DNA of 64,000 bases from Rhodosorus marinus CCMP1338 (lineage: Eukaryota; Plantae; Rhodophyta). Under the pieces are notes generated by a model that worked only from the letters and a program-made list of their open reading frames with translations, was not told where the DNA came from and ran no database searches. The stretch spans positions 1,736,001 to 1,800,000 of the forward strand of contig JAMWBK010000008.1 in the NCBI GenBank assembly GCA_029953675.1. The letters are read 5' to 3'. A program made the position numbers and the translations under genes. The stretch's first letter is position 1. Every line of letters starts with the position of its first letter. This document shows, piece after piece, positions 11,101-35,867 of the stretch.

Positions 11101-11769
11101 TAAATATTTAGTACCGATTGGATAGATAGCAAAGTCATTGGTCGAGCAGTTCCGGAGGGCTAGTTCTGTCGTGGGGTTTTTCTTCCAAAACATGGATCTG
11201 GGTCCGTGTCGTCGGCTTACAACTAACAAAACTGGCCTTTTTCGCCCATCGCGAAACCATTTTTTCTTCCTATTTTCCTTAAACTAGAGAAAAATCGTGT
11301 TTAATTTGTTGTGAAGATGCCTAAATTTCTAAACACAGGTTTGCCGCTCCCTGTCAATGACAGTTTTATCAGCGATCTCAGCTCACACAGCAGTGGAGTA
11401 CGTGCCCAGCAGTGATTCATCATCGCCTACTCCTGAACATGAAAAATAAAAAAAAGCAAAAAATTATACTAGTGGTAATATTCAAGAATAATCTCAAAGA
11501 AAGAAAAAGAGAAAAGTACTGGGTTGTGAATATTCTTAGAATTCCCGACGAACTCTCTCTTTCTTTCTTTTTTTCATTTTGTTGCTATTTTTTCCTTTTA
11601 TTTCTGTAACACTACGTTCAGAAGCCGCTTTAAGCGTAGGTAATATTTATCAAAACATGGAAAAATAATGAGCACTCGCTGTCGAGTTCGTTCCATGACA
11701 AAAGGCTTAGGAGAACGACTCCAAAAATGGAGGCCTTCCATCATGAGATTGTTCCTACGAGCCTGACGA

Positions 11770-11860
11770 AACTATACCAGTGAGAAGCGAGAAATAAGAC
11801 GCTGATGACGTATGTCCCAACAGTAAAGTGCTAGCGTTGGAACGGCAGAGTGTGGGACCC
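11770..11860 (-). mobile_element. Solo family A RLE 3' end
   Basis: GAGAAGCGAGAAATAAGACGCTGATGACG is the reverse complement of the family A consensus seen at 1-81. Confidence 0.7.
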
Positions 11861-12329
11861 GCCTCGCCACCTTCGGTGCCTTGTGAAAACTGCTTACTTT
11901 TCAATAAGCCCTTTTTGAGAGTCGTATGAGCAGATTAGACACTCAACGATACCCAAGATGGCAAACACCAATTTGTCCCGTTGGAACGGAAAAAGCGGGA
12001 CAAAAAAACTCAAAACGTACTATCGCAGAATTATCCTCAGCCAGCCAATCATTCCAAAGGTTAGACTTTCATGTCCCGAAAACAAGAACATGTTTTCAAC
12101 TTTGACAAATCCAGGAGACATTGCTGGGTGACGTTGATATTGGTCAGCTGGCTGGGAGTCCCAACAGACTACTACTCCTATTCTCCAAGTTGCTATTGTC
12201 TAATTGCTGATCGAAAAGGCACATACGTTCAGTTTTATCTTGTTTTGAGGTTTGTAAAGGCGGCGTGAATTTGTACACTAAGCTGATTAAGCAAAGGGGA
12301 GGGTGGATTTCTATGCGAAGCGTCACTAT

Positions 12330-13910: not shown

Positions 13911-13944
13911 ATCTAAAAAAAGATAACGGGAGGCTCTAATTCGG

Positions 13945-14070
13945 TTGTTCAGCGGAATTACGGCGGAGCCTGAAGAACCCATGAGCGTAAATGAAGCTAT
14001 GGAGAGTGGTCTTGCCCCCGAATGGCGAGAAGCCATGGATGAAGAAGTGAAATCACTATTGTCCCTCATC
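13945..14070 (+). mobile_element. Ty1/Copia RT N-terminal fragment
   Basis: EPMSVNEAM...PEWREAMDEEVKSL is the canonical Copia pre-RT motif EP.S..EA....W..AM.EE..SL. Confidence 0.8.
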
Positions 14071-14199
14071 GGTCAGGCCCGTGCTTCATCGGATTTAATT
14101 CCTTATCCGTTAATCGCGCTTCTTCAGCAGTCTTTTCTGAGCCTATCTCGTCCAGGAACTCATCGTCCTCGTTTTATTCCTCGTGATGGGTCAAATGTT

Positions 14200-15560
14200 C
14201 CACTACAGCATCGGTGATAGGACTCCTTTGAAGACCTTTACATCGGAACACCTTGGGGTTGATCTTCGCATCCCTCATATATGTAATTTCCCCAGTCTCA
14301 ACCTGAACATCGTAATTGCCGCATGCTCCAAGCCCTCTTCACAATCATTCGCAAAGCGCCTCTGCAACTGTGCTTGTGCACCCAAATGCTTCACGTAATC
14401 ACTGGTCTGCTCCAAAAGATGCATAACGAGATCGCTCTTCATCTCCTCGAGGTATTTCATATACTCTTCCTCATCATTCTCCTTGAGAGCCTTGAACGGG
14501 TCCTGCTCGAGTACTTTTCCGTTTGGAATTCCTGGCGCATCTCCTTTTTGGCTACCGCGTCGATGCCAGTTGAAGCTGCCTTCACAACTTCCTCTCGCTT
14601 TCCGCGCTACTCCGGCGTTTCACCGGTTTCATGTTTCCGTACGTTCGCACGTTTACACCGGCGGAGATCCGTCCGGTTCTTGAGGAGCTACACCGCGAGT
14701 TGGGATGCATTCGACCATAGCTTTGAGTTTCCGATCGAGAACGATTGATTTTCGTCTTGCTGCAGGCATTTTAATCAGCTTTGGGTGATTATCCACGTTC
14801 GATAATTGCTCAGTACTGTCTCAAGAACCCATTACTCACGTGCCTTTACGACCTCGACGTTTTTTTCAGGTTACGCAAAACATCGCCGTCAAGAATTTCC
14901 GCCAAATCTCCAATCTGGCGTAGCCACGGGCTCTCGCAGCAACGTTGAGATGGTTCGTTTTGACCAAAATTCGTCCATAGGCCCTTCAATCAGCCTGAGG
15001 TTCTCTTTGCGCTTTCTCTTGCACTTTTCCCTTCAGAACGAGGTATTTCTTAGTGACTCTGCCCAAGTTCAAGCTGGCCTGAATCCGATTGTTTTGCCAA
15101 CTAGTCCAACATTAAACAGTACTTCTTCACGTACTGACACATTCCGCCCTTGTCTGTTGTGCATCTGGTACATATCCTGGGGTTCAAAACGTCTCCGTCA
15201 GCACGCGCACAGCCTCAACGCCATCAACGACGACACGCCCGCAAGACTTAATGGTAAGCAATTTTCATCAGCCTTCTTCAGCTGCTGAAATACCTACAGA
15301 GTTTGCTGTAAAAGTCCACGTTCTCCCGCTCGTTTGAATCATCGGCAACATAAGCCCGGAGAATCTTATCAAAAGTTTCCAGTCAGTCCGTAGGCGTAGT
15401 CACGACCATAGTTCCAAGAAGATTGGCTCCGCCCTCAGTTGCGCGAACAATATCTACCAAAGTGTCCGGTAAACTACGATAGAGATTCGATCAAGTCCTA
15501 TTTCGCAAAGTACACCATTCTCAGTTTTCCGACTTCAACTTCTCCACGTTGCTGCAATAC
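14200..15560 (-). pseudogene. Decayed fragment of a SNF2/BRM-type chromatin remodeller (pre-HSA/HSA/post-HSA region)
   Basis: FKALKENDEEEY, then a 2-nt loss at ~14460, then MKYLEEMKSDLVMHLLEQTSDYVKHLG; this resembles Snf2/BRM R.ALK.NDEE.Y.KL....K..R...LL.QT..Y...L. Weaker upstream matches (ALRL...R, LIESL.SLPDTL). Several stops and frameshifts; no ATPase domain seen. Confidence 0.55.
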
Positions 15561-16469
15561 TTGTTGCTGTACTTTATGTCTCTGGAGTTGCGACGCGGCA
15601 CCATCGTCATCATGACGGCTACTAAGCTCTCCTTTTCATCGTCCAAGTAATAGCTGTTCAGTCTGTTGAAAAACCAAATCAGTCAATATTGTAAATGATT
15701 GACTTTATGGCTTCAGTCAGCACCGGAGTGGTGGTCGTTGAGCTGGTCGGGGGTGGTTTTCACTGTCACCGGGATGTACTGGGGTTACGTTAGGGGGGAA
15801 ACATAGTCCATGTTCTCCGCCTAGTACAATCATTGTCTCCTTCCTCCCGGTGGTCTTTGAGGCCTTGCTTCACGCGAGTTCGTGGACTCTATGGGTCCAG
15901 TTGACTGCTAGCATCATGATCAATTGCGCACTTCAAACCTCTGCTTCCTGTTCTTCGCCTTGTTACAAGCAGGTAGACAAGACTTTCCTTTGCCAAGGAC
16001 TTCCTCCAACTCTTAACCTTCTGTACCACCCAGTCGCGTCCTCCTTCAGTATCTCTCGTCAAAACCTTCCAATCTCCAACGGGATAATTCAAAGCAGCTT
16101 AAGCTGTTTACAGCATGAGCTGGGCTCATAATCTTTTGGATTGTCTGTTTATTCATCTGAGTGTAACACTTTATCAACGTCATCCAGAGGACTTCATCTT
16201 CATCTCTCACTCGTTGACAGAACAACAACGCGAGTTCAATCCTGCCCTAAGTAGTCCCGAAGCCATGCCTCGTCTGAACTCTCAATGACCCCAAAGATCT
16301 TGATAGCAGACAGATCGGTCTAATCGGACGCTAACGTCCCTGAACGAGGTAAGCTAGAAAGATACGGTTATCTAGTCTGACCTTCCAACTAGGCTAGGGA
16401 CGCAATTCAGCACAGGCCATCACCCGAGGTGCGCCCTATCGGGTTGGGCCACGACACCAAGACTGCGCG

Positions 16470-16600
16470 TCGGTTTGTCCGTACGACCCTTGGTGATTGC
16501 CTCCGTGAAGAAATCGGGAATCATTTCATCCGTGCCGAGATATCTGAGTTGCGCTTCACCCGATACGTGACGCAACATCCTGCAGTGTCCAGTAGTCGCC
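16470..16600 (-). mobile_element. Ty1/Copia RNase H C-terminal fragment
   Basis: GEAQLRYLGTDEMIPDFFTEAITKGRTDKPTRSLGV resembles G.I.L.Y..T.EM.AD.LTK.L......R..LG. Confidence 0.7.
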
Positions 16601-16714
16601 CAACCTAGGCACGAATCACTATCAGTAAATGGGACTTTTTGGACGCAAGTTTGGCGGGTGATGAGGAAACCAGGAAGAGCACCTCGTGACCGTTGGTGAT
16701 GATCGGTGGATCAG

Positions 16715-17330
16715 TAAACCTTGTTTCGAGGGCCAACAACCCCGAGAAGGGAGCACTGCACTCGACGAAAGCAACGAGCCTCAAGGATAAGGGCGGCTGA
16801 ACGCCGCCACAGGGCTAGACTAAGCAGAAATTGGAAACGCGTGCAGAGATCAAGTTGATTCCCAAAGCGCGCACGGAACAGGAGAACTCCTGCACCGTCC
16901 ATGAACCAAAAGACTTCAACAAAAACCGGGACGCGAGTGACTTATCGTTCATGGAGACAACGATCTGCTGCTCAGTCAACCGCGGAAGCCGAATACCAAA
17001 GCACTGGGTGCTAACCCAAAGATGGATTCGAGAGTTTATAGAAGGTTTTTGGGGTAGTTCTTGGCTTAGTTGATCCATCGTTTTAATCGGAGGCTAAGAT
17101 CCCTGAATGAGGTACTCTAGGAAGGGCGTAGGGGGCGAGCCTCCAAAACTAGGGCAGCATTACAGCGCCAGAGGGTCAAACTTAAAGTAGCCAGTCGGGT
17201 GGGAGCATCAGGGCATTCCCGCAACCAAGCACCCCCAGCGCTATCTAAGAATCCAAAGATCTCTCTAACAAAATGGGACAAACCGATAAGCAGCGCAGAA
17301 TGCAAAGCCTCATCGTTGGAAAGCGCCTCC
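16715..17330 (-). mobile_element. Two tandem RLE retroelement 3' fragments on the minus strand
   Basis: LSLALWRRSAALILEAR (~16775-16825) and GFLDSAGGAWLREC.DAPTRLATLSLTLWRCNAALVLEARPLRPS* (17117-17250). Confidence 0.8.
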
Positions 17331-17333
17331 GGC

Positions 17334-17530
17334 GATGGATCAGTGCACGGATTCAAGCCACGGCTCGTAGAGGTTTTGCGCTGGAGCAAGGAATGGACTT
17401 TGAGCAAATCTTCCCCCCTACGGTGGATTTCTCCAGCGTGAGGTTAACTATTGACAATACTGGCGAGAAAATATGGAGCTGGTACAGATTGAATGTTACA
17501 CAACCGCGAACCCGGAACGCGGAGTTGCGT
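17334..17530 (+). mobile_element. Ty1/Copia RT core fragment (frameshifted)
   Basis: DGSVHGFKPRLV, then RGFALEQGMDFEQIFPPTVDFSSVRL...W...LNV; this resembles DGS..R.KARLVARGF.Q..G.DF.ETF.PV....S.R. Confidence 0.8.
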
Positions 17531-20500
17531 AGGGAGCTCTCAACGAGACCAAAGAAAAAATTGGAAAATCTGGATCTACGGAGAGGACGTATTTTATCTG
17601 TTCTGAAGGGTATTCTTGCAATATTATGGTAAATATCTGTACATAAAAGGAGTATTTTAGGCTCGACAGGCCTTAAATACAGCATAATAGAAGTAAAAAG
17701 TATAAAATTCTCGAACGGTTCCACAACATTCAAGTTCCCGGCCCTTGTTGAACTACTAAGCAAAGACGCAAAGGGCATAGTTTCCTTATTACAAGTACGA
17801 CGTCCTCTTTCGTGTGCGGTAAACCGTCGGTGCTGGTTGACCTCTTTACAGCTGGTGAACTAATGAACTCGGACCTTGGATCCTAGTTCAAGAAGGCCAT
17901 ATTTCAAACGCTGCACAGTACACACTCAAACAAAAATTGTGCATTGGACGGATATGCACTGTTGAACATAAGTGACCAGGCCGCCCCAATCTTGATTACA
18001 CGGAAAGCGCGATAAAAAAGTCTAGCGGGCAACCACATGAAGTACCCATCCTCTGCTCACTGCCACTTGCCTGAAAACGAACGTACTCCTCGGTAACGGC
18101 TTCCAGCAATGGGCGCGCAACCCTATATCTGTCCCATCGCCGCGCAGCTGCTCAGTGCTACGGGTTCTTTGCCGGGAGCCCACCCAGAGTCCAGATTCCC
18201 ATACCCCTTGGAATCTTCCTCCACATTGAGGGACGACGGGAGCGATCTTGTCCCATATTGAAAAGGGCTACTCAACTGAAAGCCCCAAATCGATTCATCG
18301 TAAGTGATTCTCAAACGACTGATCTCGCCGTCCCACGTTCATAGCAGGAGTATTTGGACAACAAAGAACTGTGTGTAAGCCCACACACCGACCTTCCACC
18401 ATTCTCGCACTCGCCCTCTGAGCTCTTCTATCAACCCCTCCATGAGCACGCTTTCACCACTACTGATTGCGTTCCCAAAAGACGACTAAAGCAACGACTA
18501 AGGAATAGCCAAAGATCCGGAAGCAAGAAAAAAGTTCCAGTGCCTTCTACTACTGCGACACCGAAGGCCACTCTCGTTGACAGCCCCCGTCCACGTCGGC
18601 AACTATGGACCAGCCGGCGGAACCCAGAACGTACAACTCCCATGACAAGATTGCTCGCCCTATTCCGTGAAAGATAAAAAACCCAGTCAACAAAAACAGA
18701 TATACAAAAAGACTGTGTAGGGGGCGGGGGAAGGGGTATAGTAGAGTATTGGTAGCCATGTCTCGGCTTCAAAATAATTACAAAAGAAGAAAACCAAATA
18801 GAATTGAGTCTTCCTTATCAAGTCTATCTATTTTCCTATCTCCCCAAAACATCAAAAAAATAATGAATATTATATGGCTCGATGGTGGGATCAAATTGCC
18901 CACCAAATTCTATCGAATCTTATCGTTGGTATCATCAACGACAGAGATCAGCTTTAATGGCCCCCCCAAAAAGACACATTGAGCATCGTGTTCGCTAGAG
19001 AAGATCCTGAAGCACATTCATACTTTTCCCATAAATTTTTTTTGATATAGTAATAAGGAGATTCTGGGAAGCGCATGAAAGAAAACGTCGTATTGGAGAT
19101 GACGGAGAATTAACCAGGGAAACTCGGAGGAGAAAAAAAGGGGCATGCTCCACATGATCGAGTTTTTTAATAATTTGGAGCCATATAATGATATTTGGTG
19201 TAGACATCCAAGGGGGGGGGGGGTGGGGTAGTGTTGTATTGAAGAACCCCTCTCAACACGACATGTGTTTAATGTAGTTAACCAATAATATTATATGACT
19301 TCTTTTTTTTCACTTCGTTTCTTCTTTTTTTTCCAGCTGCACAACTTAATTACTCTCCAAAAAAAAAAAAAAACCCGGTCTGAGACCCGCTGGCGAGCAT
19401 TTACGTTTCCGCACAGTACGTCTGCTGTCTGTCGGGACAAGGTCCCCCGCCGTTCCTTGTTTTTCATATATTGTTTTAGTCAAAGTTCTCTCTTAGACTG
19501 ATTAAGAAATTTTGAGGAAAAATCATACTGACTAGTTGGCGTTTTTTTGGTGTATTATAGAGAAAATTGCTTGCCGACGCATAATAAACGACTAACTAAA
19601 AATAATAGTAAATATTGCCATGGTTTTCTAACGGGTTAAGGATTCCAATTTTTCACTACAAAATGATGGCTTGAGTTTGAGAAAACAATGTCCAAAAGCG
19701 GGGAATTCCATTCTAGGGCCCATAAATATAAATATTTCTGGATGTCCAAAAAAAAAATCCTTTCCGATTTCTGTCCTTTTTTGGCCCCAAAGCTGAGAGT
19801 GACGAAGACTTTGAATCTCAATAAAAAAAGAAGAGGGGCCCTCTTCCGACCTCCTTTCCCATCGCATCCGATCCTTTCGGAAATCTTATGAAAACTGATA
19901 AATGCGCTTCCCTAACGAGGAATCTGAACGGTGAATTGTTTTTAATTGACAAGTACTCATGTTGTTGATAGGAGTGATGACGAAGGCTCGTCGTTCCAGA
20001 TTTCTATTGGTAGATTTCTCCAGCAAAAGGTGAATCTAAAGTATGTTCCCGCCACGTATATTTTTGAACAAAAAAAAGATGAAACTTTTTGCAATGTACA
20101 TTCCTGTTTTGGGGTCGAAAAAAAATGCGACTGAATACAAGTACGCAATAGTAAAAACCCCTGAACAACTACCGACGACGCAGCTTTGAGTACACCCCAT
20201 GCAGCCAAGGGTGGGCGCTCGTTTAAGATTGCTGAAGAATTAAGGAGTGTCTGTAAAACATGCGACCCAGGGGTTGTTTCTTAACAAAAGAAAGAAAAAA
20301 AAGAAGGTGACTATCCCCCCTCTTCCCTCCCCTCATTTCATCAACGTTGAACAGGATTTTCCAACCAAAGCTTCCCCCCTCCTCCAAAAACCCGTTACCC
20401 CCCAAAAAACAAGAAAAAACCTCCCCTCTTGAAACGTTTTGGGGCTTTTCGTTCTATGGGCAAAATCACCTTACCCCCCTCCCGGCGTTGCTAGATAGCA

Positions 20501-21162
20501 ATCTTTTTGGTTGTCCTTCCACATTCCGCCACGAAAAAGCCTCTACATTTGTTTTTCCCTTGCGCGAAAATATCACTTGCGTCTTTACCCTCGTCGACAA
20601 CATAGAAAAGTGGAATCCCCGTCAAGCCGAAAAAGGCTTCAAAATATCATAATTAAAGATGGAGTTCTCCTAATCAAGAACAAGATACCTATATTCTAAG
20701 AATTTGACTGCCGAGGAAGAATTTATTTGTTTAGACTAGAGTAGTTGTCCAGTGAATATCCCGAAAATTTTAAAAGTGACTGAATACATGTTTTTATTTT
20801 ATTATACAGTTTTCTGTGGGCAAGCGTCAGCCAGGCGGCTTAAGCAGAAAACTCATTGAGCGATGTGCACTCTGTGTTCGCAGACACCGCTTTTGAAAGG
20901 AGTGCTTCAAGAGTTGGGAGGGAAGTGAAGGGAAGAGCAGGGGCGGAGGGGGAGACTGTAGGGGATGAAACAGCGAGGTTTTGGAAAGGCGGAAAAAGCC
21001 GAATCGTTTCGAACCGCTACAGGGCGGCTTCTGTTTTGGAGGTTGAGGTAAGGGGCGAGTGCCGCTCGGGGTCGTGAGGGAAGGGTTGGGGGTGAGAGGG
21101 GAGGACCAGAATTGGGATTGAAAGTTTGTAGTTGGTTTGGTCTTGTAATTTTCTTCGTCAAG

Positions 21163-23376
21163 ATGGCGGTGGATTTGTACATGGATCCCACCACGGTCAA
21201 CGTGCTGACCGACCTAATCCTTTTGGTTTTGCAAGTCGCTTGGGTGAAGCTCATGGCATGGCTGACCGCGCTTGACTTGAAGCGGAACCTGAGAAAGGGA
21301 AATCGCCTGTTTTCTTACGAGCACTGGGGTACTGGGGCATACTTGTACTTTGGAATTCGAAAATACAGGAAGCTTTCAAAGAAAAGCGCGTTGACTGCGG
21401 AGGAGCGGCGCCACTTCATGTTCCACTCGTGTATTGCCTTCAGCACAGTTATTTTCACACTGGCCTTGATTTTCCTGCACATACTCATTGATTATGGTCT
21501 GGACTTTAGGCAGATACCGCAGCGTACTGGGACGAGCGCTGCCTACGATATGGTTGGATTCTCCCCTAATTCCGAGTATATCACGCTGCTGAACCAGTAC
21601 CAAAACCTGGGCGAGGATCTTGCCAGCTGTGTGAACGAGGGAAAGAGTCCAGAGGATTGCCGAGACAGCGTAGAAGAGGTCTCAGAGTTTGTCAGAGAGA
21701 AGCTGCGCGAGGGAAGCAGCTTCGTCAAGCAACTGTATGAGGCATCTAGCTTAACCCAAGTGGATGTGATCGAAGAAATGGAAATTTCGTATCAGTGTGC
21801 TGATAGCAATGCGATCAATGAAAAGTTGAATTGCAAGGTTGTCGAGGAAACGACGGACTTTTTCAACGGAGAGTTTCGATACACGCCGGAGAATGCGATC
21901 CACCGCAAGAAGCAACTGAGAATGTTGAAGCTTGACATGCGTGCGAAGCAAGTGGTCGCTGAGAGGGCCCTGGTTCGGAAAGGTGCCCACACTGAGGAAC
22001 TTTTGAATAGGCTCCGTGGCGTGGACAAGGACCTTAGCTACGTGTCCTTTGAAAATTTCAAGGATGAGAGACAGACGGCAACAAAGATCACCGTCGAGAA
22101 AGCTCAGGTTGATTCGTTCGCCAAGGTGGAAGCCAAGTATAGGCTAGCCAGAGTGACCACCGACTCTGGGGTCGTCTACAACGGAAACAAGCAGGGTGTC
22201 AAGTTTAGGCAATTGACTCGGAGCAAATTCGGTCGGAAAGCCGATGAGGACTTTACTTTCAAAACGGTGGTGCAGACGAACGTGGCATGGGACGTGAAAT
22301 CTGGCGTTCACTGCGTTAGTCCTCATTTCCGTTCCAGACGTGATGGCGAGAAGTTCCAGCTGGAAATTTCCTACCAGGGCCAGGAGTGTGGGAAGTACCC
22401 CATTACGGGGAACTTCGACTGGTGTTACGCTGAGGATCTCGCCTACGAAAAGTCCGCAAACGAGGAGGACAAGCCAGAGGAGATCAGATTTGGACGGCAG
22501 AGGGCATTTGGAGTCATTGTGTTGACCGTCGGCGACGAGTGCTACGACGAAGTATACTCAGCCTATCGGCCGTTCATGAACGATGATATCCCGGCTGATC
22601 AGAGGACCTTCACACTCGGCATGAGCTTTGAGGTGCTGTGCACTCCGGAACAAGGTGGCCGAACAATGACCTGTGCCTATGGCAGCACAAGACTTTACTA
22701 CGACGGAGAGAATTTTCTCAACGAGGAACCGCCGGAGGTATCGGAGGAAGACCAGGCTAATGGTATTCGCGAGTTGGATCCAATTAAGGCCAAGGCTGAA
22801 ATATCGTTCCACATGGCTGAGATTGACGGTGGTGATCCGAGCGTCAACCGAGAAGTCATTGCAAACGCGAAGGCCGTGATAAATGAGCAGTATACGGAGC
22901 TCCGTGAGTTCACTGATTTCAGGGTGATGAGAGGGCGTTTGTTTGGGTCCCTGGGACATTTTGCGTTCCGGGATACGATCGCCGCGTATTCCTCTCAGAT
23001 TGCTGCAGTTCAACGTACTGTTGGAACATACGAGCTAGTGAACATTGCGGTGCTTCTTGACGAGTACATCGGAGGTTTCCTGGCGGTAGTGTGCATTACG
23101 GGGGTGGCGCTGTTGCTAGTAATTTACCGGTACTTTGCGGAGAGGTATAAATACAGATACCTCAACTTCCACGTGAAGGTACCGTTGACTATAACGGAGT
23201 GGATTCACACCGCTCTCAACGATGACGACAAATTTACGACGGGATCTGGAGATTTGAATCAGAAGTTGGAGTACACTGGTAACCCAGACACGCTCCGATC
23301 TCACAGGGGTGGGAGCATTGTAGGCTTTTTCAATACGCCGGAGGCGTTGGACAAAACCAAGCATGTTGATGAATAG
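21163..23376 (+). CDS. Novel 3-TM membrane protein with a large Cys-containing ectodomain (paralog 1, 737 aa)
   Basis: Intronless ORF. The first ATG is 21163 (the track start at 21112 is TTG) and is colinear with the Met of paralog 2. Hydrophobic segments near aa 12-37 and ~90-110, and YIGGFLAVVCITGVALLLVIY near the C-terminus. Confidence 0.9.
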   Translation: MAVDLYMDPTTVNVLTDLILLVLQVAWVKLMAWLTALDLKRNLRKGNRLFSYEHWGTGAYLYFGIRKYRKLSKKSALTAEERRHFMFHSCIAFSTVIFTLALIFLHILIDYGLDFRQIPQRTGTSAAYDMVGFSPNSEYITLLNQYQNLGEDLASCVNEGKSPEDCRDSVEEVSEFVREKLREGSSFVKQLYEASSLTQVDVIEEMEISYQCADSNAINEKLNCKVVEETTDFFNGEFRYTPENAIHRKKQLRMLKLDMRAKQVVAERALVRKGAHTEELLNRLRGVDKDLSYVSFENFKDERQTATKITVEKAQVDSFAKVEAKYRLARVTTDSGVVYNGNKQGVKFRQLTRSKFGRKADEDFTFKTVVQTNVAWDVKSGVHCVSPHFRSRRDGEKFQLEISYQGQECGKYPITGNFDWCYAEDLAYEKSANEEDKPEEIRFGRQRAFGVIVLTVGDECYDEVYSAYRPFMNDDIPADQRTFTLGMSFEVLCTPEQGGRTMTCAYGSTRLYYDGENFLNEEPPEVSEEDQANGIRELDPIKAKAEISFHMAEIDGGDPSVNREVIANAKAVINEQYTELREFTDFRVMRGRLFGSLGHFAFRDTIAAYSSQIAAVQRTVGTYELVNIAVLLDEYIGGFLAVVCITGVALLLVIYRYFAERYKYRYLNFHVKVPLTITEWIHTALNDDDKFTTGSGDLNQKLEYTGNPDTLRSHRGGSIVGFFNTPEALDKTKHVDE

Positions 23377-23599
23377 GCCACGCCGTTGGAAATTTTTTTA
23401 TACTAGAGTTGTTTGGCAACAGTTTGAACTCGTACGAGTCTCCGAGTTTTCGATATATTCCTTAAAACGTTTTTAATAGACGGAACTCGTAACTCAACTT
23501 AAGGTCCGACTGAACGCCACGTGCATCAAGAAACCTCGCCCAACAAATACGTACGTCGGGCTTGTCGTCCGCTTCCCAGATCGTGACCATTCAGGTGAA

Positions 23600-24330
23600 A
23601 CGGAGAGCGGTCAAAAGTAAAGGGCTGTAGAATTGACAATAGCTCCCTGGCATTTCTCCGGCGGTCCCGGTTGTGCAGCAGAGCTTTATGTCAAGTAAAC
23701 GAGTGTCCACCTGGTCATCTGAAACACCCCAAATCCATGCTGTGCAGATTTTTTATGAGATTGCTCGATGTGGCTAGGAGACGCCCGCGAATGCCTTGGA
23801 GCACGCTCGCATCTGGCGGGGCCCGCTTGCTCAATCTGAACTATGGTGCTCAACGACGAGCTGAAGTTCATTCACCTGGGGAGGGACTCAGCTAGCTGCG
23901 TTGATGGATGCGATGTCCCTTTCGTCAAATGCGGCAGCCCGCATGACTCCCAGGATTACAACGGGAGCTGCGTTTGTCTCTGACAGACATTGGGTACTAA
24001 AACCCGGCGACCGTAAATTGTGTGTTTTTGGATCGGATCTGTCGCAGCTTCTTTAGGATCAGTTTCCGGATGCTGAGCACGCGTTGACATCGGTAAGCAA
24101 GGACGCCTTCCCCTCGATATCACCACTCCGGTTTTACGTTGTGATGATCTTCTTCAAACTGCGTTATTGGAATACCCCATCAAAACGAGTTCTTTTTGCC
24201 ATGTACAAGAGGACTTGTGCTGTGTCGCTCGTATCAGAGCCAGTCTCCGGGCGCCCCGGTCTCGGCTCCCTCGATGAGGTCAATTTTTGCCCCATTTTGA
24301 CATGGACTTGCTTGAGGAGTGGAAGTCAAA
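23600..24330 (-). mobile_element. Degenerate Ty3/Gypsy RT remnant
   Basis: Across shifted frames: VF...P..SP....KIDLIEGAE; RSLKKIITT*NR; KLILKKLRQIR; ATSSNLIK...LGCF...RNARELLSIL. Order is consistent with Gypsy RT. Confidence 0.5.
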
Positions 24331-26567
24331 AACACACGCAGTTCTGTAGTCACCCCACTTCAAGGAGTAGAAGGCGCTCATCAACTGCACCGTCATCCTG
24401 TTCAGACTCTGTGCGGGAGAGAGGGAATTGACTCTCTCACCGTCTTCCCCTTCCCACACTGACAATCGACATCCACCCGGATCGTCTCTATCTTCTTCCA
24501 TCAATCAATTCATAGACTCCTCAGTCAAATAAATTGAACATCATTTAGAACAGGTTGACCAAATATAGATATTGAAATTATACATCAAAAAGAAGCAAAA
24601 AACACACAAAAAAAACTAGAAACTGTTCTCTCGTCAGCGCCAACGAAGGAGCCCCACAGGAAGAGACGCGAGAATTGAGGACATCCCAAAACGTCCATTG
24701 CTGGGCACCACCCCCCCTCCCTTCCACAACAGAACGGGATGTGTAGTATGGAGATATCTTCAACGAACAGGATGCGTCAAGACCAAATAATCCCTGTAAT
24801 GTTTTCCAAAAAAACATTTTGCTTTAATAAATGCAAAAACGGAAGAAAAAAGCAAGGATTCGATGGGAGGGGATGAAGGATGAAGCTATCGGTTCCTCAT
24901 GAAGATTATATTGTATGATGGAATATATTTGCTATGTTTAGACCTTGATTGCTACAAGGTAAGGGGGGGAAGGGAGATAGTTTTGGAGAGAAAAATTTCT
25001 GTTGGCGATGATTATGTTCTCTCGAAAAGCAAATAAATATAGTAGCATTTCTCGTAGGTCTTATCACTGAGGGTCGTCACTCGGGTTTCCTCTAATGAAA
25101 TTTAATTATTTGCAATCCGATGAAAACAATCAGTGAGTGATTGTTGATGTCTCTCTTTCTTCTGAAATGGGGTTGGCTGCACTCTGGAATTCACCGCCCT
25201 TCTTACAGCGTCGGGATACCCTGCAAAATCGTTTTTAAGAAATTATTTTCCATTCTAGATGAAAACCCCCACCCCTCGGTAGACCACAAGCTCACCCCAT
25301 CGGGCTAACCTCGAATTCTTGCCTAGCAACCAAAAAAAAACCAGCTATGTCAAAAGTCAAAAGAACTCAAATCGAGGAGAAGGTAAACACAAAAGGACCC
25401 TTTTCTAAGGAAAAACATTATGTAGTGGTCATGAGAACTGAGAATGACTTACCCTTCTCCGTTTAGACTTTGTATCTTCGTCGATTTTCACATCTAAAAG
25501 TTCAGGAAAGCGTTTTTGGGAGATGGAACGCAAAGGCATGGTCCGTGTAAATTTTTAGGTTAAAACAAATACCCTTTGGTAGGCAAAGCGGGACATAGGG
25601 TAGATAGGTTTTTACTACTATTTTTAACATATACGTACATTCCTCTACTCGGCGGGGGGGGGGGTGCAGGAGCTTACACAATCCCAACCATGCCAAAATG
25701 TCATGTTTTTTTGGGCGCGTTTTCTCACACAAGCGATTAGTTGTGAAAGAGGAAAAATCTTTGGATTCTATAAAAACTTAATAAAAACCCAAAAGTAAAA
25801 AAAAATCCATGTTCTGGATGATCGATCGTCTTTTTAGGAGAAAAAAAAAAAGTTTCTTTTTAGAGAGAGAGGTGCACACAGCGGGCAATTGAATGTGAGG
25901 CATAGAAAAACCTCTCCAAAATGAGGAGAAAAAGAAAGAAATCTAACACCCCAAAATCGAGTCTATACGTACCTGAAGTTTCCACAGCGGAAAGACCAGA
26001 AAATTTATAAAATACAATTTGACAACGGACCCAGCCTCTATTTCTTAGGATAACGAATTGGGCGGAGTTTGGAAAGGGGGTGGGGTTTTAAATAGGGGCC
26101 GGGGGTGGTGTAAGGTAGATTGGTAGTTTCTTTTTTTGGATGTTTTTGTTGCACTAAAAAGATGATGGGACGCTGACGATTTGGGGGTCTCCAAATTGTT
26201 GTTAATGGTGTAATTTTTCACTCGTTACGGGGGGTTGGGTTTTTGGGTATGTGGTGTTTTGAGCGGGTCTCGGCTGTCTTGCAAAGACGGGTGACAAAGG
26301 AATGGTACGGGGAGGGATGTGGGCGAGGGTGTTAAGATAGTGAACTCCTAGATGAGATGGGAAGTGGTGGACTGGTGAGAGGATCTGGTAAAGGTGGGGA
26401 CGGTTTGAGAAGTTGTGAAGGGAAGGTGGTTTTGTAGACCAAAGGTTGGTGAGCCGGCGAACGGCTGAGTGGTGTCGTTCAGGTTTTTTGCTCGGATGAG
26501 TGGGTGTTGAGGGTTTGCGAGCTGACTTGAGGGCAAACAGGCTCAGAGTCTGTGGATTGGAACCGAA

Positions 26568-28769
26568 ATGGCGATTAGGGTAGCGGCGAGTCCCACTATT
26601 GTAAACGTTATCACCGATGCGGTGTTAATTGTTTTGAACTTGTTGTGGTTGAAGTTTATGTCCGTTCTGACCGCTTTGGATCTGAAGAGGGATCTGAGAA
26701 ACGGGGAACGGTTGTTTTCTTATGAGCACCTGGGCACTTTTCACAATCTGCACTACGGTGTGAGTAAGCATAGATATTTGACGAGGGAGAAGATGATGGA
26801 TGATAAGCTGCGTCGACACTTCCGATTGCACACTTTGAAATCAGTGTTCTTGCTTATCGTCGCGATCATGCTTGTTCTCCTCCACATTCTTATTGATTAC
26901 GGACTTGGTTTCGATACGGAGCCGACAGTTTCCAACGAAACAGATATTTACGAAATGATGGGTCTCCAAGCAAACAGCAAGGTCTTCACAAATTTTGAGG
27001 CCTATCGTAGGATGGTTGTCGAAGAGGACTTTTGCGATCATCCTGATGCTCCGTCTACCTGTAATCATGATCAAGTTACAACGCTCATTGCGCGTTTGTG
27101 GGAGCTAAACAGAGAGACGACAGGGTTCGCAAGGACCTTGTACAATTCGCCGTCTATGAGCGACGCTGACTTCCTCGACTACATGGAGGCCGACTATGTG
27201 TCCTTGAGGAAAGATGGGCAGTCTCCAGCGGCCAACGCTTGCCTCATTAGAGACGTAACAGCGCTGGAAAAGTTTGAAGGGAATTTTGCATTCACCGAGG
27301 AGGACTGCCAGATCGATGAGTCGTATGTAACAATGGTCCGGGTTGATGGTCGGGGAAAACCTGTAGTCAACGTAAGATTGTTAGCGCCGAATGCCAAAAT
27401 GCAAGCAATGTATGAGTCTGTTGGCGTGGAGGATGTACTCAGCCAAGTTGCGTACGCTAGTGGCAAGGACGAGAGGCAAGGGGAAACGACCATGTCGATT
27501 AGGAACGTAGATGCGCCCGGAAAGAACCCGAATAATCTTAGCACGATGGCCGTGGAGTTCGACAGTAAGCTTAGTTACGTAGACGGCCAGAAACAGACCT
27601 TCAGCACTGTGCAGTTGACCAGGCGGGGCGAAGGCGTCTTCGCGGATCCAGATTTTGGTTTGCTTATGGAGACGAAAATAGATACCCCTATCCTCGATCG
27701 AGATCCGTGTCTCGCGCTGAACGATGCTCAAGGACGTGGAAGGCTAAATTTGCAACTAAGGGTAACCCACCAAGGGGAATTCTGCGGAGAGTTCCTTCCT
27801 ACGTTTGCTACCCGGACCTGCTCTTCGTACCCCCTGGCAGCTTACGACGAAGTACCAAACGATGGCATAGTTGGCATACAGGTTGCCGGTGTTGTGATAC
27901 TGGTTGACAAGACCAGCAAGTGTGGTAAAGCGGCGTACGAAAAGTACGGAAGCCAAATGGACGAAGATGTTGATGAAGACAGGAATCAATTGTTCTTGAG
28001 TGTGGTCTTGGACATTGCCTGCGTTAGGATAACGGAGCCTGATGCTGAGACCGTTCAGCACAGTTGCGTGTATGGAGCGGATAGTGTGCAGTTCCAAGAC
28101 GGCGAGTGGAAGGCGTTTGAAGACACTACTGGGGATTTAGAGGGTATTGTTCCCATTCCTTTGAGAACCGAGCTCAGCTGGGTGGGTGGATCTGTAAACG
28201 GGGGCTCGTCTACAGAGGTCGCCGCCGTGTTTACGGAGATGAAGAGGAACTTGAATACTTTCTACCCGGAACTCCATTCACAGACAACCTTCAACATGAT
28301 GCGTGGCAAAATTTTCGGTTTGAAAATGCATGAGAGCATGCTCGCAGTGATGGCTACGTTTTCCAGCCAGCTCACCGCAGTGAATCGGGAAATGGGCCTC
28401 ACAGGACAAGAATCTGTGGCCGTGCTGGAGGGACCGTACCTGGGTGGTGTGCTGGCGGTACTGATTATCAGTGGAGTTGCATGCCTGGTTGTTTGTCTCC
28501 GGTATCTGCAAGAATGGTACGAATACCGGAAGCTGGGTGTCCGGGTCAACGTCCCGCTCTCCATAACGGAGTGGGTCGAGGCGGCGCTTACACGAGAGGA
28601 CCTCGAAGATCAAACGCCAGGGGCGGAAGCCGGGGGAACGAAGAAGGACATTGATGGGGTTTACGAGTTGACGGCTAAACGGGTGGATGATCCTACCCAG
28701 CAGGAGTCGCGAAGCTACGTTGCTTTCTCGGAGAACACTCAGCCTTTGGAGAAAAGTGAAAGCAACTAA
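26568..28769 (+). CDS. Novel 3-TM membrane protein with a large Cys-containing ectodomain (paralog 2, 733 aa)
   Basis: Intronless ORF; 34 of the first 56 residues are identical to paralog 1. Shares LTALDLKR.LR.G.RLFSYEH.G, LHILIDYGL, KDERQ, MRG..FG, SSQ..AV.R, GG.LAV..I.GVA and VPL.ITEW. Confidence 0.9.
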   Translation: MAIRVAASPTIVNVITDAVLIVLNLLWLKFMSVLTALDLKRDLRNGERLFSYEHLGTFHNLHYGVSKHRYLTREKMMDDKLRRHFRLHTLKSVFLLIVAIMLVLLHILIDYGLGFDTEPTVSNETDIYEMMGLQANSKVFTNFEAYRRMVVEEDFCDHPDAPSTCNHDQVTTLIARLWELNRETTGFARTLYNSPSMSDADFLDYMEADYVSLRKDGQSPAANACLIRDVTALEKFEGNFAFTEEDCQIDESYVTMVRVDGRGKPVVNVRLLAPNAKMQAMYESVGVEDVLSQVAYASGKDERQGETTMSIRNVDAPGKNPNNLSTMAVEFDSKLSYVDGQKQTFSTVQLTRRGEGVFADPDFGLLMETKIDTPILDRDPCLALNDAQGRGRLNLQLRVTHQGEFCGEFLPTFATRTCSSYPLAAYDEVPNDGIVGIQVAGVVILVDKTSKCGKAAYEKYGSQMDEDVDEDRNQLFLSVVLDIACVRITEPDAETVQHSCVYGADSVQFQDGEWKAFEDTTGDLEGIVPIPLRTELSWVGGSVNGGSSTEVAAVFTEMKRNLNTFYPELHSQTTFNMMRGKIFGLKMHESMLAVMATFSSQLTAVNREMGLTGQESVAVLEGPYLGGVLAVLIISGVACLVVCLRYLQEWYEYRKLGVRVNVPLSITEWVEAALTREDLEDQTPGAEAGGTKKDIDGVYELTAKRVDDPTQQESRSYVAFSENTQPLEKSESN

Positions 28770-29431
28770 AGTTCTCATCTAGAGTAGTTGCGAGGTGCGG
28801 TGTCTCTTCATCGCGTGTGGAGAGGGGAAGCGTTGATTTTGGCACTGCCTGCGTTGTACATTGTCTGTAGAGCTAGGAAGAGCGGTAGAGCGCAAGCAGA
28901 CTCCCGGTGTTCCGTAGTTTTATTAATATTTTTGTATACGGAAGTAAACTTTAAAAATTAGGAAGAGGTGTGGTCGGGTCGAGCGGTTCCGATGCCGAAA
29001 TCCAAGCCAAGGTGCTTTCTGCAACCCTGACCTCTGTCTTTAGAGTTTTGCCGGGAAACGAATCGCCGTCCTGAAACGTTTTCACAAAGGCCGTGTTCGA
29101 CGCCCTTCGCTGTCTCAAAAACAGCTTCCACCGGGGTTTGGATTCGACCCCTGCCGTATTCCCAAAGCAGTTTCTCTGGGACTCGCTCGCGGGTTCGATT
29201 CGTGGAGGAAAAGTGCGACTGCCTTGCGAGTTGTAGGAGGTTTTGAGCAAGGGTGATGGTCCTACTTCAGCATGGGCACTTTCTTACGAAGCTTGAGGCT
29301 GGTGGACTGTGGAGAAGCAACGCCAGTGATTATGATAAAGGTCTTTTCAAAACCTTTGCTTTTAGTTTTTTGATACAAAGCGCCAGAGCTGACTTACTAC
29401 AACTACGCTTTCAGAGGGAAAGCAACCCACC

Positions 29432-30055
29432 CTAGTTAATTGGAATGGACGTGCTCGGAGCCTCCGAAGGGACGCTCTTGGGGATGGTGATCGTCAGAAT
29501 TCCATCCTTGACGTTGGCAGATATTGCTTCCCTCTGTACACTCTTCGGAAGCGGGAACTGCCGTTTAAATTGTTTTGCCGTCGTCCAACCTACAGATTGC
29601 TCAGCCTTTGGTTTCTCTTCCTCCATGTAGGGGGTGGCCTCTGTCGGCTCAGCCGCAGCCTCAGTCTCCTTGACCTGCGCGGTGCTCTTCTGCATCTTCC
29701 CAGAGGCTACCAGAAAATCGCCAACGATCTCAACGTTGATGTCTTCTTTCGCAAACCCAGGCACTTCCAGTCTAACCACGTACTCTGTATCCTTGTTTAT
29801 GAACTCCCCTCTCGGGGCAGTCCGAAAGCTCCCATCCGAGTACCCGCTCGATGCCATCTCCTGAAACAGCGGGTTCAGGATCTCGTTGAAGAGGGGACTG
29901 GTCCAGAACGCATTGTTCATACGCATGGGGCTCACTCGCATGGGTCTCATCATGCCTCGTCGATAACTAGGACCACATCGACAAGTCGTGTTCACCCTAG
30001 TCACCACGGGACTCCCGACTCCCGCTACACTACCAACAAATCCAACAGAGTTCAT
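29432..30055 (-). CDS. HSP20: Small heat-shock protein (HSP20/alpha-crystallin), probably plastid-targeted
   Basis: YVVRLEVPGFAKEDINVEI...L..SG and FKRQFPLPKSV..EAISANVKDGILTITIPK...IPI; Arg/Ser-rich N-terminus with a GFV motif. Confidence 0.92.
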   Translation of the reverse strand: MNSVGFVGSVAGVGSPVVTRVNTTCRCGPSYRRGMMRPMRVSPMRMNNAFWTSPLFNEILNPLFQEMASSGYSDGSFRTAPRGEFINKDTEYVVRLEVPGFAKEDINVEIVGDFLVASGKMQKSTAQVKETEAAAEPTEATPYMEEEKPKAEQSVGWTTAKQFKRQFPLPKSVQREAISANVKDGILTITIPKSVPSEAPSTSIPIN

Positions 30056-32201: not shown

Positions 32202-35200
32202 ATGGGTGAAGTTGCTGAAGGCTTTGAGACTGGGCTGAAGGAATTCGAAAGCCGGATCGGGGGATGCGAGCACGCGCTGAATTTGTTTGCGAGTGCCGGC
32301 GATCGAAAGGCTTTGGAGCTGGTTGAAAGAGAGTTAAAGGCCGTTGGCGGGGTTTTGGAGGATTTAAGTCTTCTACCTGATGAATTGGAAACCAACGAGG
32401 AGTCGGACGCAGCTTGGTCCCGTCTGGAAATTGCAAGGACAAGCCGAGAGGAGTTGTCCAAACAAATGCGTCGGCTTGTGCAGGAAAACCGCGCGGTTCT
32501 TGCAAATGCAGCGAGACAGGAGCTCCTCCAGGCTGCTCAGAAAGATACTGGAAAGGGAGAGAAGTCAAGCATGGGACAACTCGCAACCTCAATCACGTCA
32601 GGCATGAGGAGAACACATGCCCTCCTAGAGAACGAAGTAGCCAGGACGTCCACAATCACAGAGGTAGATGCTGACTTCCAAGCACCACTCCAAGTAGACG
32701 CTCACTAAACGCTCTCATACCAACTCCCCAAAACAGGTCGTTGAGGACCAAACTTCAACCATAACCAAGACCGGAGACGTCTATCGAGATCTAGGCGCTA
32801 AAGTAACCACAGGACAGGGCACAGTACGACGGCTACGAACAAGGTAACCTTTCCAAGCTCCAACACGAATCTGGAATCTCTTCCATAGCACCATCTCGAG
32901 CTCTATCCTAAGGCTACTCCATCCTAAGGCTCTTGCAGCCCGAAGAGAGTACGTCAGGACCCGGCGCTTCGGGTTACTTCGCGGGCCACTTAGCTCAGTA
33001 GAGTTCGCTCAATAGATCCATTTTGGACCCAAGTAGATAAACTTTTAAGACTGGAACCACTAATCTGAACGCACCTTCCCGTCTTCTTCGTCAAATCCAT
33101 TAGAGAGAGAGCTGAGCGATGGGCCGTAAACGTTGCTATGATTTTCTTCCTGGTGTCGGTAGCGTTTGTACTTCAGCGTCGTGTGAGCAACACCTTTGTG
33201 GTTCGAAGAGTGGTAGAACCCGCCAGTCGTGGAGTCTTCATGGCTTTGAAATGGCCTGTCGCTCAGTTGAAAGAGCAGCTTGGGATCGACTTCGATGAGA
33301 CCTCACTGGGTAGCATGTTAGGGAAGAAGGATCCTTTCAGTAGTGGCTCAGCTCTTGTGGATTTAGGGTCTCAAGGCGATGATGAGGATGATGAAGTGGG
33401 GGGTATTAAAGCGTTCAAGAAGCTGGAGAGAGAGAGGCAGTTTAAGAACAAGAAGACTCCGCTTGTGGAGTATGTGGTCATGCCCGAGGAAGAGGATCCA
33501 TCTTGGGAGCCACCGTTCGACTTGGAAGGAGACAACGAAGGTGAGATCGATGAGAAAAGGGAAGAACCTTCCGATGAAAGAGAGCCAGAGCCAGGTTTGG
33601 GAATGGGCGAACAGAAGGAAGCAGTACCTACTGATGCAGGAGAACCAGAACCTGGAACTGGACTAGGTGAACAGAAAGAAGCGAAAGAATCTGATGCAAG
33701 AAGAGAACCAGAGCTGAGTGAGGGAATAGAGGAACAGCAAGAAGCAACAAAATCTGCTGAGATTGGGGACGGTCGAGATGACGACCTTGACGAGCGCGTG
33801 AGGGCCCGACAGGCGCGGATAAGAGAGCGAAGGAGAAGAAGATATGAGCAAGAGGATGCCGGTCCATCCACTGAGATCCTGACGGAAGACCCTGAGCAGG
33901 CCCAGGAGCGTGAGATCGAGCAAAACCTTGAGCAAGAGCGCGTAGAAGAAGAAATCAATGAACATTTCAAGCTGGAGTCGGTCGACGATGAGAGGGATAT
34001 CGAACTCGAGACTTTTTCTGGTGAGTTCACTCTGACTTGTGCTCGCGGGCGCCGTGGAGGTCTTCGACTTGCCCCTTTATTCCTCATTACGTGATCACGG
34101 AGTGCTTCCCCTCATTTTTTTTATCTGTTGTCGTATGAGCTAGAAGACGGAGCGGAGTCTCAGGAGGAAGGCGAGGAAGAAGTGGTAGAACCCGGCTGCG
34201 AAGCCAGCGGAGACGGCCAGTGCAAAGCCGTTGGAGAATCCGAAGAGAAGAAATCGATCGATGATAAACGAGGTGATTTCTTGAACATGTGGAAAGGTCG
34301 ATGTGCTGGGGACGCATTATGTGGCTAAACATCTTTTTCTGTTGTCCAAATGGTTCTGTTCAATCCGTACGGTGTAGATCTTGAACAAGATGATGATGGC
34401 TTTGGAGATGAAAGCGAACTCTCGTCGGAAGATAGCTCTAGCGAAGGTGACTACATAGCAGACGCAGAACAAGAGACAGCGGCTGCAGTCGAGGACGGCG
34501 ATGTCCGGAAAGATCTTGAACAAACTCGCGAGATTTCTTCGGAGTCGGAGCTGGTGACTGATGAACAAGAGAATTTGGTGGAGGACGGAGAGCAGGCTGC
34601 TCTCGAGGTGCTGAACGACGAACCTTCAGGAGTCGGAGAGGATTCAGATGAAGGTGGTCCTGGAATAGAAGGAGACTCCGGCGCCGTGCTTGAGGAGAGC
34701 AACGTGCAGCAGGTGACAGATCACGCAGGAGAGCTTGTGATTGACAAAGAACATGGCCAAATTGAAGCAAAGGAAGAGGAAGAGGAGAGATCCGCGCCTT
34801 TGAGCGACGATAGAGCAGGGAAGGAGAAGGAAGAAGATCTCTCTGTGGCATTCGGAGAGGAAGCCGGTGAGACCCTCCTGACTGGGAATGGAGCTGGACC
34901 GGAGGAAGAGCACGACTCACGAACCAAGAGCGAGGAGGGAATTGTGCGGGAAGCAGAGTACTCGCTGTCTGAGGCTGAGGCTCCTGCCGGCGCTCATAAC
35001 CCTGACATGCACATAAATTCCGATCAGCACCCTGAATCACGTGCAGACGATGATAAGGCCGAAGACACCGAGATGGAGCGTGTCGAGGATGGCATGGACC
35101 ATGGCGATGAAATCAGCGAAGAGCATGTAGTCGAAGTATCTGCCGAAGAGGCTGAGCAGGTTGATCCTGAATCTGCCGTTGATGATCAAAGCTACGACAT

Positions 35201-35867
35201 GGGTATGGGGAAAGAGTCTCAGTACACTGTAGATAGGGTGGAGAGCTTGGAGGAAGAAACTTCAGGAGGAGACAGAGGGAATCTAGAGCAAGGTTCCGAA
35301 GGCAGTTGGGCAGGCGAACCCACTACGCGGGCGCAACAGGCAGAGGAGGAAATGGGTGAAGGGACTGCAGAACATGAAGAGTTCGTGGAAGCGTCGGGTC
35401 AAGAAACTAATGAACTGAACAGCTACTCGCATGTCGCAGTTGACGATGAGAGCTCCGACGAAACTCACCACGGCAACACTGACGGCGATAAACTCAAACG
35501 CGATTCTCAAGCCGCGGAAATGGATGAAGTTATCGATGAGAGCACGATCGCCTCCGACATTGGAGTTCGCTCTGAAGCGCAGGACGTCGAAGGGGACTAT
35601 GAAGAACACGGAGTTGGAGAGGACGAGGACGCCGGGGCGCCAGACGATATTCCAAGTATGGAGGCTCATGTTCGGGTCGGTGCAACTCCTTCAGACACCA
35701 CGGAGTCCACGCTCGAGGAGGAAACCGCTGGGGAGGCTCTCACGCTTGAGCACTTTGCTGATCAAGTGGATCCATCCAGTCCGAACGCGAGTGAAAATCT
35801 ACTTGATGAGGAAGGCAACTACGTTTTCGAGCACGAGGCAAACCAATTCGAAGAATACGAATTATGA
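32202..35867 (+). CDS. SEC20: SEC20 (ER Qb-SNARE) with a very long acidic luminal tail; 5 exons, ~1034 aa
   Basis: Exons 32202-32663, 32737-32843, 33104-34020, 34144-34272 and 34378-35867. All GT-AG phases are compatible and the total is 3105 nt; an alternative donor at 34297 is also in phase. Sec20 motif SITSGMRRTHALLENEVART...DQTSTI, TM WAVNVAMIFFLVSVAFVL followed by QRR, C-terminal EYEL. Confidence 0.75.

Follow-up and report, generated by a model that had tools for sequence, protein, structure and literature searches.

Two intron-free tandem genes of Rhodosorus marinus encode predicted three-helix membrane proteins with a conserved membrane core and a variable, cysteine-rich outer domain

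The closest described systems in layout are the P2X receptors and the ENaC/ASIC channels. In P2X, two helices flank a dolphin-shaped, disulfide-rich, mostly beta outer domain of ~280 amino acids (aa) with 10 Cys (five disulfides) and an ATP site of Lys, Arg and Asn residues, and the helices run into strands. ENaC/ASIC subunits assemble into trimers that conduct Na+; they have two helices and cytosolic termini, an outer domain made up of palm, beta-ball, finger, thumb and knuckle, an HG motif before the first helix and a G/S-x-S (GAS) filter in the last. Here we describe two paralogous genes, A and B, which lie in tandem in a 64,000-nucleotide stretch (the window) of the nuclear genome of the red alga Rhodosorus marinus CCMP1338, on contig JAMWBK010000008.1, with window position 1 at about 1,736,001. 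Both products are predicted to be membrane proteins in which a conserved membrane core carries a large and variable outer domain, and they belong to a family that, on present evidence, fits no known kind.

The family resembles P2X in its helix-flanked, disulfide-rich outer domain, in the 10 Cys of most members (the number known for P2X), in the continuity of helix and strand and in having paralogs that share the membrane part. It differs from P2X in an extra N-terminal helix, in an N-terminus predicted to lie outside, and in an outer domain of ~510 aa, about twice the P2X length, which has alpha+beta modules and no alignable ATP-site residues. With ENaC/DEG/ASIC the family shares an outer domain of similar size (to that of ENaC), the brackets of helix and strand around it, a helical cluster after the first strand and a conserved cytosolic segment before the helix that enters the outer domain. 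The order of transmembrane (TM) helix, strand, three-helix cluster, beta body, helices, strand and TM helix recalls that of ASIC, a likeness used here as a lead only. In contrast to ENaC/DEG/ASIC, the family has three helices and an N-terminus that its charge pattern would place outside, and it is known from one red-algal genus only. In the family alignment the loop before the second helix carries the motif FS[YF]E.xG[ST], in which the His is not conserved and no HG motif is formed, and the third helix has Y624, G627 and V631 and no GAS. None of the 10 members matched PF00858 (ENaC/DEG/ASIC) or PF00864 (P2X) at E≤10, single-sequence and profile searches of the PDB sequences found nothing (the sole match, 2lht at E=3.2, was noise), and no ASIC, ENaC, P2X or fusogen chain was among the 50 PDB matches listed in a Foldseek search of the predicted fold. 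The initial annotation of this locus, made from the sequence alone, had proposed a receptor or ligand-gated channel of ENaC/P2X-like layout. The layout, in which TM2 and TM3 pass into strands, is reproduced by the structural model, and membership of ENaC or P2X is unsupported; the role itself is one that we infer.

The gene pair and its family

Genes A and B are long open reading frames (ORFs) on the same strand of the window, 3.2 kb apart, and both proteins are identical to annotated gene models of CCMP1338. Their coding sequences and the minimum spans transcribed, including untranslated regions (UTRs), are as follows.

21163..23376, + strand: coding sequence of gene A, single-exon, 737 aa plus stop (ORF; annotated in GCA_029953675.1; orthologous mRNAs)
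26568..28769, + strand: coding sequence of gene B, single-exon, 733 aa plus stop (ORF; annotated in GCA_029953675.1; orthologous mRNA)
20959..23493, + strand: minimum transcribed span of gene A with UTRs (contigs L004 and L005, one piece each, 85-88% nucleotide identity)
26463..29037, + strand: minimum transcribed span of gene B with UTRs (contig L003, one 2580-nt piece, 86.8% identity)

By BLASTP the two proteins are 32% identical over 698 aa (E=6e-108) and colinear from Met1, and no third copy of the family was found within the window by tblastn. A longer ORF with a TTG start opens at 21112 in front of gene A, and the transcript-derived orthologs begin at the ATG Met of A. Orthologous mRNAs are present in the MMETSP transcriptomes of other R. 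marinus strains, two for gene A (P0004 and P0005, 86-88% identical) and one for gene B (P0002, 87% identical). Since each of these mRNA contigs maps to the window as one unbroken stretch, both genes are transcribed and unspliced, in keeping with the view of the initial annotation that they are two intronless paralogs of ~735 aa. Genes A and B are thus functional, expressed and constrained members of a multigene family.

The extent of the family became visible in an exhaustive search, in which 1.84 billion representative proteins were compared, without a word index, with a HMMER profile built from A, B and the orthologs of both; word-index searches recovered near-identical orthologs only. The profile gave 7 real matches, all from R. 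marinus, and one artefact (P0011, E=2.4e-07 with 10 matched stretches), a repeat protein that matched a 55-residue stretch containing Cys and Gly. The family comprises at least 7 paralog lineages (A, B, P0006, P0007, P0008, P0009 and P0010), of which P0008 and P0009 are intron-free genes, one each on two other contigs of the CCMP1338 genome. In a neighbour-joining tree there are 3 deep subgroups, namely A with P0006 (94% bootstrap), B with P0007 (96.5%) and P0008 with P0009 (100%). The A/B pair is ancient, because the tandem partners sit in different deep subgroups, and the tree suggests that the pair may later have been duplicated as a block. Several of the paralogs are expressed in transcriptomes of ordinary vegetative cultures.

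No relative outside the genus was detected. The hmmscan search of Pfam-A, a library expected to include models for ASC, P2X, HAP2, ZP and CD36, left A and B unmatched at E≤1 and all 10 members unmatched at E≤10, and the family had no match in NCBIfam or PHROGs. Scans of JGI metagenomes, IMG/VR and GTDB genomes yielded motif-pattern matches, of which 0 were confirmed by tblastn, and no paper was found in a literature search on the family accessions and on Rhodosorus membrane proteins. Judged by these sequence searches, the family is an orphan known so far from the genus Rhodosorus only, in a lineage with few close relatives whose proteomes have been sequenced. Orphan families are common among poorly sampled protists, which weighs on the novelty of this one. 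On the available evidence, from sequence profiles and from the fold search described below, the family fits no known kind, and the initial annotation had likewise recognised no family in the pair.

All four genomic members examined (A, B, L001:10001-12253 and L002:10001-12313) are single-exon genes of ~2.2 kb. The R. marinus genome is reported to have 8,392 genes and 24,821 introns, or ~3 per gene (PMC10250338). Several neighbouring gene models span more DNA than their products need and hence contain introns. The intron-free copies are therefore conspicuous in an intron-rich genome. The codon composition of the family genes is host-like, with a GC content at third codon positions (GC3) of 0.58-0.63 versus 0.48-0.63 in neighbouring genes, and no mobile-element repeats were found flanking A and B. 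A recent horizontal transfer was considered and is unsupported, as GC and GC3 are like those of the neighbours and flanking repeats were not found.

Membrane core and outer domain

Hydropathy gives 3 hydrophobic segments in each protein, at residues ~9-37, 88-112 and 621-648 in B, with the third at 632-659 in A. The parts of the two proteins map to the window as follows.

21187..21498, + strand: membrane core of A, residues 9-112, with TM1 (9-37), basic loop (38-87) and TM2 (88-112) (hydropathy, invariant residues)
21499..23055, + strand: predicted extracytosolic alpha+beta domain of A, residues 113-631, 10 Cys (alignment to B, Cys and charge counts)
23056..23373, + strand: TM3 of A (632-659), juxtamembrane VPLTITEW and predicted cytosolic tail (660-737) (hydropathy, alignment)
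26592..26903, + strand: membrane core of B, residues 9-112, with TM1 (9-37), basic loop (38-87) and TM2 (88-112) (hydropathy, charge; model helices 9-44, 58-73 and 79-112)
26904..28427, + strand: predicted extracytosolic alpha+beta domain of B, residues 113-620, 10 Cys, with bounding strands 113-133 and 602-620 (AlphaFold2 model m577fc46c32c1, with a predicted local distance difference test score, pLDDT, of up to 95; Cys and charge counts)
28428..28766, + strand: TM3 of B (621-648; model helix 622-656), VPLSITEW and a low-confidence predicted cytosolic tail (hydropathy, alignment, model)

In each of the nine full-length members, the loop of ~50 aa between TM1 and TM2 contains 12-15 Lys/Arg and is positively charged overall (+5 to +12). 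Eight of these members have a domain of ~510 aa between TM2 and TM3 with an acidic net charge (-14 to -35), and in P0006 this domain is close to neutral (+4). The positive-inside rule would place the TM1-TM2 loop and the C-terminal tail in the cytosol, with the large domain and the short N-terminus on the other side of the membrane. The predicted topology is thus an outside N-terminus, TM1, cytosolic loop, TM2, extracytosolic domain, TM3 and cytosolic tail, which agrees with the external Cys-rich domain supposed in the initial annotation: the loop is basic in every member and the large domain is mostly acidic.

Conservation is concentrated in the membrane core. Four motifs of the cytosolic loop and the C-terminus that had been noticed in A and B (LTALDLKR.LR.G.RLFSYEH.G, MRG..FG, SSQ..V.R and VPL.ITEW) are genuine and family-wide in the alignment. 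Invariant across the family are P9, N13, T16, D17, L20, W27, K40, R41, S51, E53 and G56, followed by H106, L108, D110, Y111, G112 and L113 at the end of TM2 and by Y624 and G627 at the start of TM3. Polar residues among these lie within the membrane helices (N13, T16 and D17 in TM1; H106 and D110 in TM2), and they cluster at the outer-leaflet ends of the helices, beside two long strands of the outer domain; small or polar stripes run along the full length of all three helices. Among 6 paralogs the membrane core is 40-53% identical versus 19-28% for the outer domain, with one closer pair at 41% in the outer domain.

Selection on the two genes follows the same division. The ratio of nonsynonymous to synonymous substitution rates (dN/dS) was estimated by the Nei-Gojobori method between the window genes and their orthologs in other R. 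marinus strains, and it was 0.13-0.18 overall (0.16-0.18 for gene A and 0.16 for gene B). By part, it was 0.09-0.12 for TM1, loop and TM2, 0.06-0.09 for TM3 with the juxtamembrane segment, 0.04-0.11 for the tail and 0.15-0.29 for the outer domain; the values for gene A were 0.09-0.11 in the core, 0.20-0.22 in the outer domain and 0.04-0.08 in TM3 and tail. Every part of A and B is therefore under purifying selection, and the contrast between a variable outer domain and a core conserved in membrane and cytosol, as first described from A and B alone, is now quantified both in identity and in dN/dS. Diversifying selection over whole domains is ruled out, as dN/dS is at most 0.29 in any domain. 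In the same comparison with orthologs, pN/pS in 40-codon windows reaches maxima of ~0.9-1.0 at residues 301-340 of A (22063-22182) and 323-362 of B (27534-27653). These windows overlap at ~300-360, which could be a variable surface patch, the sequences being too few for significance of positive selection. The strains labelled Rhodosorus marinus differ by ~12% in protein and by a synonymous divergence (dS) of ~0.4-0.6 at the A and B loci (P0002, P0004 and P0005), which suggests that several species may go by the name R. marinus.

Most members, A and B among them, carry 10 Cys in the outer domain, and 9 of these align between A and B. The divergence of this region had been recognised correctly in the initial annotation, and its count of about eight aligned Cys was slightly low. 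Seven Cys are invariant in the family (156, 165, 225, 406, 452, 485 and 500 in B numbering). C381 and C418 are absent jointly from P0006, and C212 and C247 alternate between subgroups; such correlated changes would be expected between disulfide partners, and the Cys count of the domain is even. Of the basic residues of the outer domain, R182, K300 and R352 are invariant and R303 is present in 9 of the 10 members. An internal duplication of the domain was not found by hhalign.

The structure of B, the only one of the two proteins to be modelled, was predicted with AlphaFold2 from a ten-sequence family alignment (mean pLDDT 77.5; predicted template modelling score, pTM, 0.66), and many blocks of its outer domain have pLDDT >90. 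In the model, a short N-terminal strand (residues 3-5), which would fit an outside N-terminus, precedes the TM1 helix (9-44), a cytosolic helix (58-73) and the TM2 helix (79-112). The TM2 helix continues unbroken into a 21-residue strand (113-133), which is followed by a three-helix cluster with C156 and C165, by two alpha+beta modules that are rich in beta structure, their strands reaching 16 residues, and by a 30-residue helix (548-577). Within this region, residues 434-577 are arranged as strand, helix, five strands and long helix. Finally, a 19-residue strand (602-620) leads directly into the TM3 helix (622-656). From this arrangement the coupling of strand to helix is inferred to be rigid.

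Foldseek searches of the predicted B monomer gave no significant match, either in the PDB (a copy up to 2026, expected to include ASIC, ENaC and P2X entries; best E=0.065 at a TM-score ≤0.2, all TM-scores ≤0.22) or in BFVD (best E=0.014). The weak matches have recurring themes, namely long-strand sheets like those of pore formers and sheet-on-helix folds (START, Bet v 1, BPI and hotdog). An earlier AlphaFold2 model, from 5 sequences of two paralog types, had a pLDDT of 39, and its Foldseek matches were disregarded except for these themes.

Candidate functions

It is possible, with a probability of about 35%, that A and B are subunits of an oligomeric receptor or channel that is driven by its outer domain. 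The variable outer domain would sense a ligand or a physical stimulus, and the two long beta-strands, which run on into TM2 and TM3, would relay the signal to the conserved membrane core, with its polar faces of N13, T16, D17, Q24, H106, D110 and Y624. Once the subunits had oligomerised, perhaps A-type together with B-type, the core would open an ion path or rearrange the cytosolic loop to signal. The family would then work like a P2X/ASIC-type subunit and yet be no detectable relative of either. Membrane regions that are mere anchors evolve freely and are normally the least conserved part of a protein. Here the membrane part appears to be more than an anchor, because it is the most constrained region and has invariant polar and charged residues. 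A variable sensing part combined with a conserved transducing part across paralogs is usual in receptor and channel families. A more specific form of the proposal, which we consider doubtful, is that the proteins form an as yet unrecognised class of outer-domain-gated oligomeric channels that arrived at the P2X/ASIC design independently, with one more helix at the N-terminus. Such a class would be limited to stylonematophycean red algae, and its paralogs (possibly as A/B heteromers) would be tuned to different cues from outside.

Several points weigh against a receptor or channel. No channel or receptor fold was retrieved by Foldseek from the PDB at the E-values and TM-scores given above. In membrane helices, polar and small residues can also serve simple packing or assembly with partners. 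The structural model was built from 10 sequences. The proteins may sit in the plasma membrane or in an endomembrane, and N-glycosylation sequons are few in the outer domain (0-5 per protein).

The first alternative, somewhat unlikely in our estimate, is a structural, adhesion or matrix protein of the cell surface, in which the outer domain would bind wall or mucilage (for example sulfated polysaccharides) and the core would only anchor the protein, oligomerise or dock a conserved partner, with no ion path. An outer domain that is large, acidic and disulfide-rich, and yet contains the invariant R182, K300 and R352 (with the nearly invariant R303), could hold an anionic ligand. The Pfam scan and the model contain no cytosolic enzymatic domain, and the expression of several paralogs in vegetative cultures would also be expected of such a protein. 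However, the helices and the cytosolic loop are the most conserved part and include invariant charged residues, which is unlike the usual anchor.

An endomembrane protein of the ER, Golgi or vacuole is the next alternative and an unlikely one. Its lumenal alpha+beta modules would bind a hydrophobic ligand (for example a lipid, a sterol or a pigment precursor) or pass it on, and the work would be done at the polar cluster on the membrane boundary. The outer domain is like helix-grip (START/Bet v 1) and aerolysin-type folds in its strands of 16-21 residues and its sheets on long helices, and these were the only themes to recur among the weak Foldseek matches, which included CERT START, PYL/Bet v 1, BPIFA1, Ups1, CoxG and hotdog proteins, some of them from the low-confidence first model. 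The order of elements in residues 434-577 is typical of helix-grip domains. Invariant His, Asp and Tyr residues form a cluster where TM1 to TM3 reach the outer leaflet, and the scarcity of glycosylation sequons would also fit. Nevertheless, the matches were non-significant (E≥0.065 in the PDB, probability ≤0.14, TM-score ≤0.22) and there was no sequence signal, as none of the 10 members matched a lipid-binding family in Pfam; the ten conserved Cys suit lumenal and extracellular sites equally.

Very improbable is an origin by capture from a virus, as an envelope or fusion glycoprotein, or a role in gamete or cell recognition and fusion, with the family spread as intron-free copies. The outer domain, rich in beta structure and disulfide-bonded, leads into a helical stem and a C-terminal membrane helix, much as in HAP2/GCS1 and class II fusion proteins. 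In addition, all four genomic copies are intron-free in a genome with ~3 introns per gene (PMC10250338), and the range is one genus. In contrast to HAP2/GCS1, the proteins have two N-terminal helices in place of a signal peptide and type I topology. No match to PF10699 or another fusogen model was found in Pfam, no fusogen was among the Foldseek matches listed, and no relative was found in IMG/VR, the BFVD structures or PHROGs. The host-like GC3, the lack of mobile-element repeats beside the genes, the deep divergence of the paralogs, the vegetative expression and the purifying selection in every domain all speak against capture or a gamete function. The mating or recognition system that the initial annotation had offered as one option is likewise not borne out, with all paralogs present in transcriptomes of vegetative cultures, an overall dN/dS of 0.13-0.18 and a maximum of 0.29 in any domain.

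A true but extremely diverged member of ENaC/DEG/ASIC or P2X with an extra N-terminal helix is scarcely credible. An outer domain set between TM2 and TM3, helices that run on into strands and the 10 outer-domain Cys speak for it, and the missing profile, fold and motif matches described at the outset speak against it. The remaining probability belongs to functions outside these readings.

Genomic setting and significance

No annotated gene lies between A and B (23377-26567, 3.2 kb) or in the 10 kb upstream of A (11163-21162), where ORFs are short. The two stretches are gene-sparse, the genome mean being one gene per 3.7 kb. The sole repeat in these stretches is an array of 283-bp units at 12331-12884, by now decayed, and related copies of 80 nt extend to 12978. 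Other features of the window are the following.

1386-1498, + strand: U5 spliceosomal small nuclear RNA gene (Rfam RF00020, 58.2 bits, full length)
6604-8127, - strand: 507-aa ORF with a hydrophobic N-terminus, Cys-rich middle, Pro/Thr linker and RTX-type calcium-binding repeats (PF00353, E=4e-58, 11 matched stretches)
29432-30055, - strand: HSP20/alpha-crystallin small heat-shock protein with an N-terminal extension, convergent with gene B (E=6e-19; annotated)
33138-35867, + strand: two extremely acidic low-complexity ORFs, which may be exons of a 556-aa Sec20-domain model from near 32202
36305-37792, - strand: 495-aa ORF with a signal-like N-terminus and no Pfam match
52725-55250, + strand: 841-aa ORF with a C-terminal AMPK-type glycogen/starch-binding module (PF16561)
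56338-57252, - strand: ORF with a CAP N-terminal domain (PF21938)

RTX-type repeats are known mainly from bacteria and are unexpected on a red-algal nuclear contig.

Should deeper profile or fold searches tie the family to a known superfamily, it would become an ordinary divergent member of it. Regardless of function, A and B present a confidently modelled fold without a match in the PDB or BFVD and a clean case of a constrained membrane core combined with a diversifying outer domain, and an intron-free family in an intron-rich genome bears on how such families arise and spread. Red algae are reported to have lost about a quarter of their ancestral gene inventory (PMC6811547). If A and B are indeed receptor or channel subunits, they would represent a new architecture that converts external signals into events at the membrane, and a rare lineage-specific family that gives a red alga sensory capacity.

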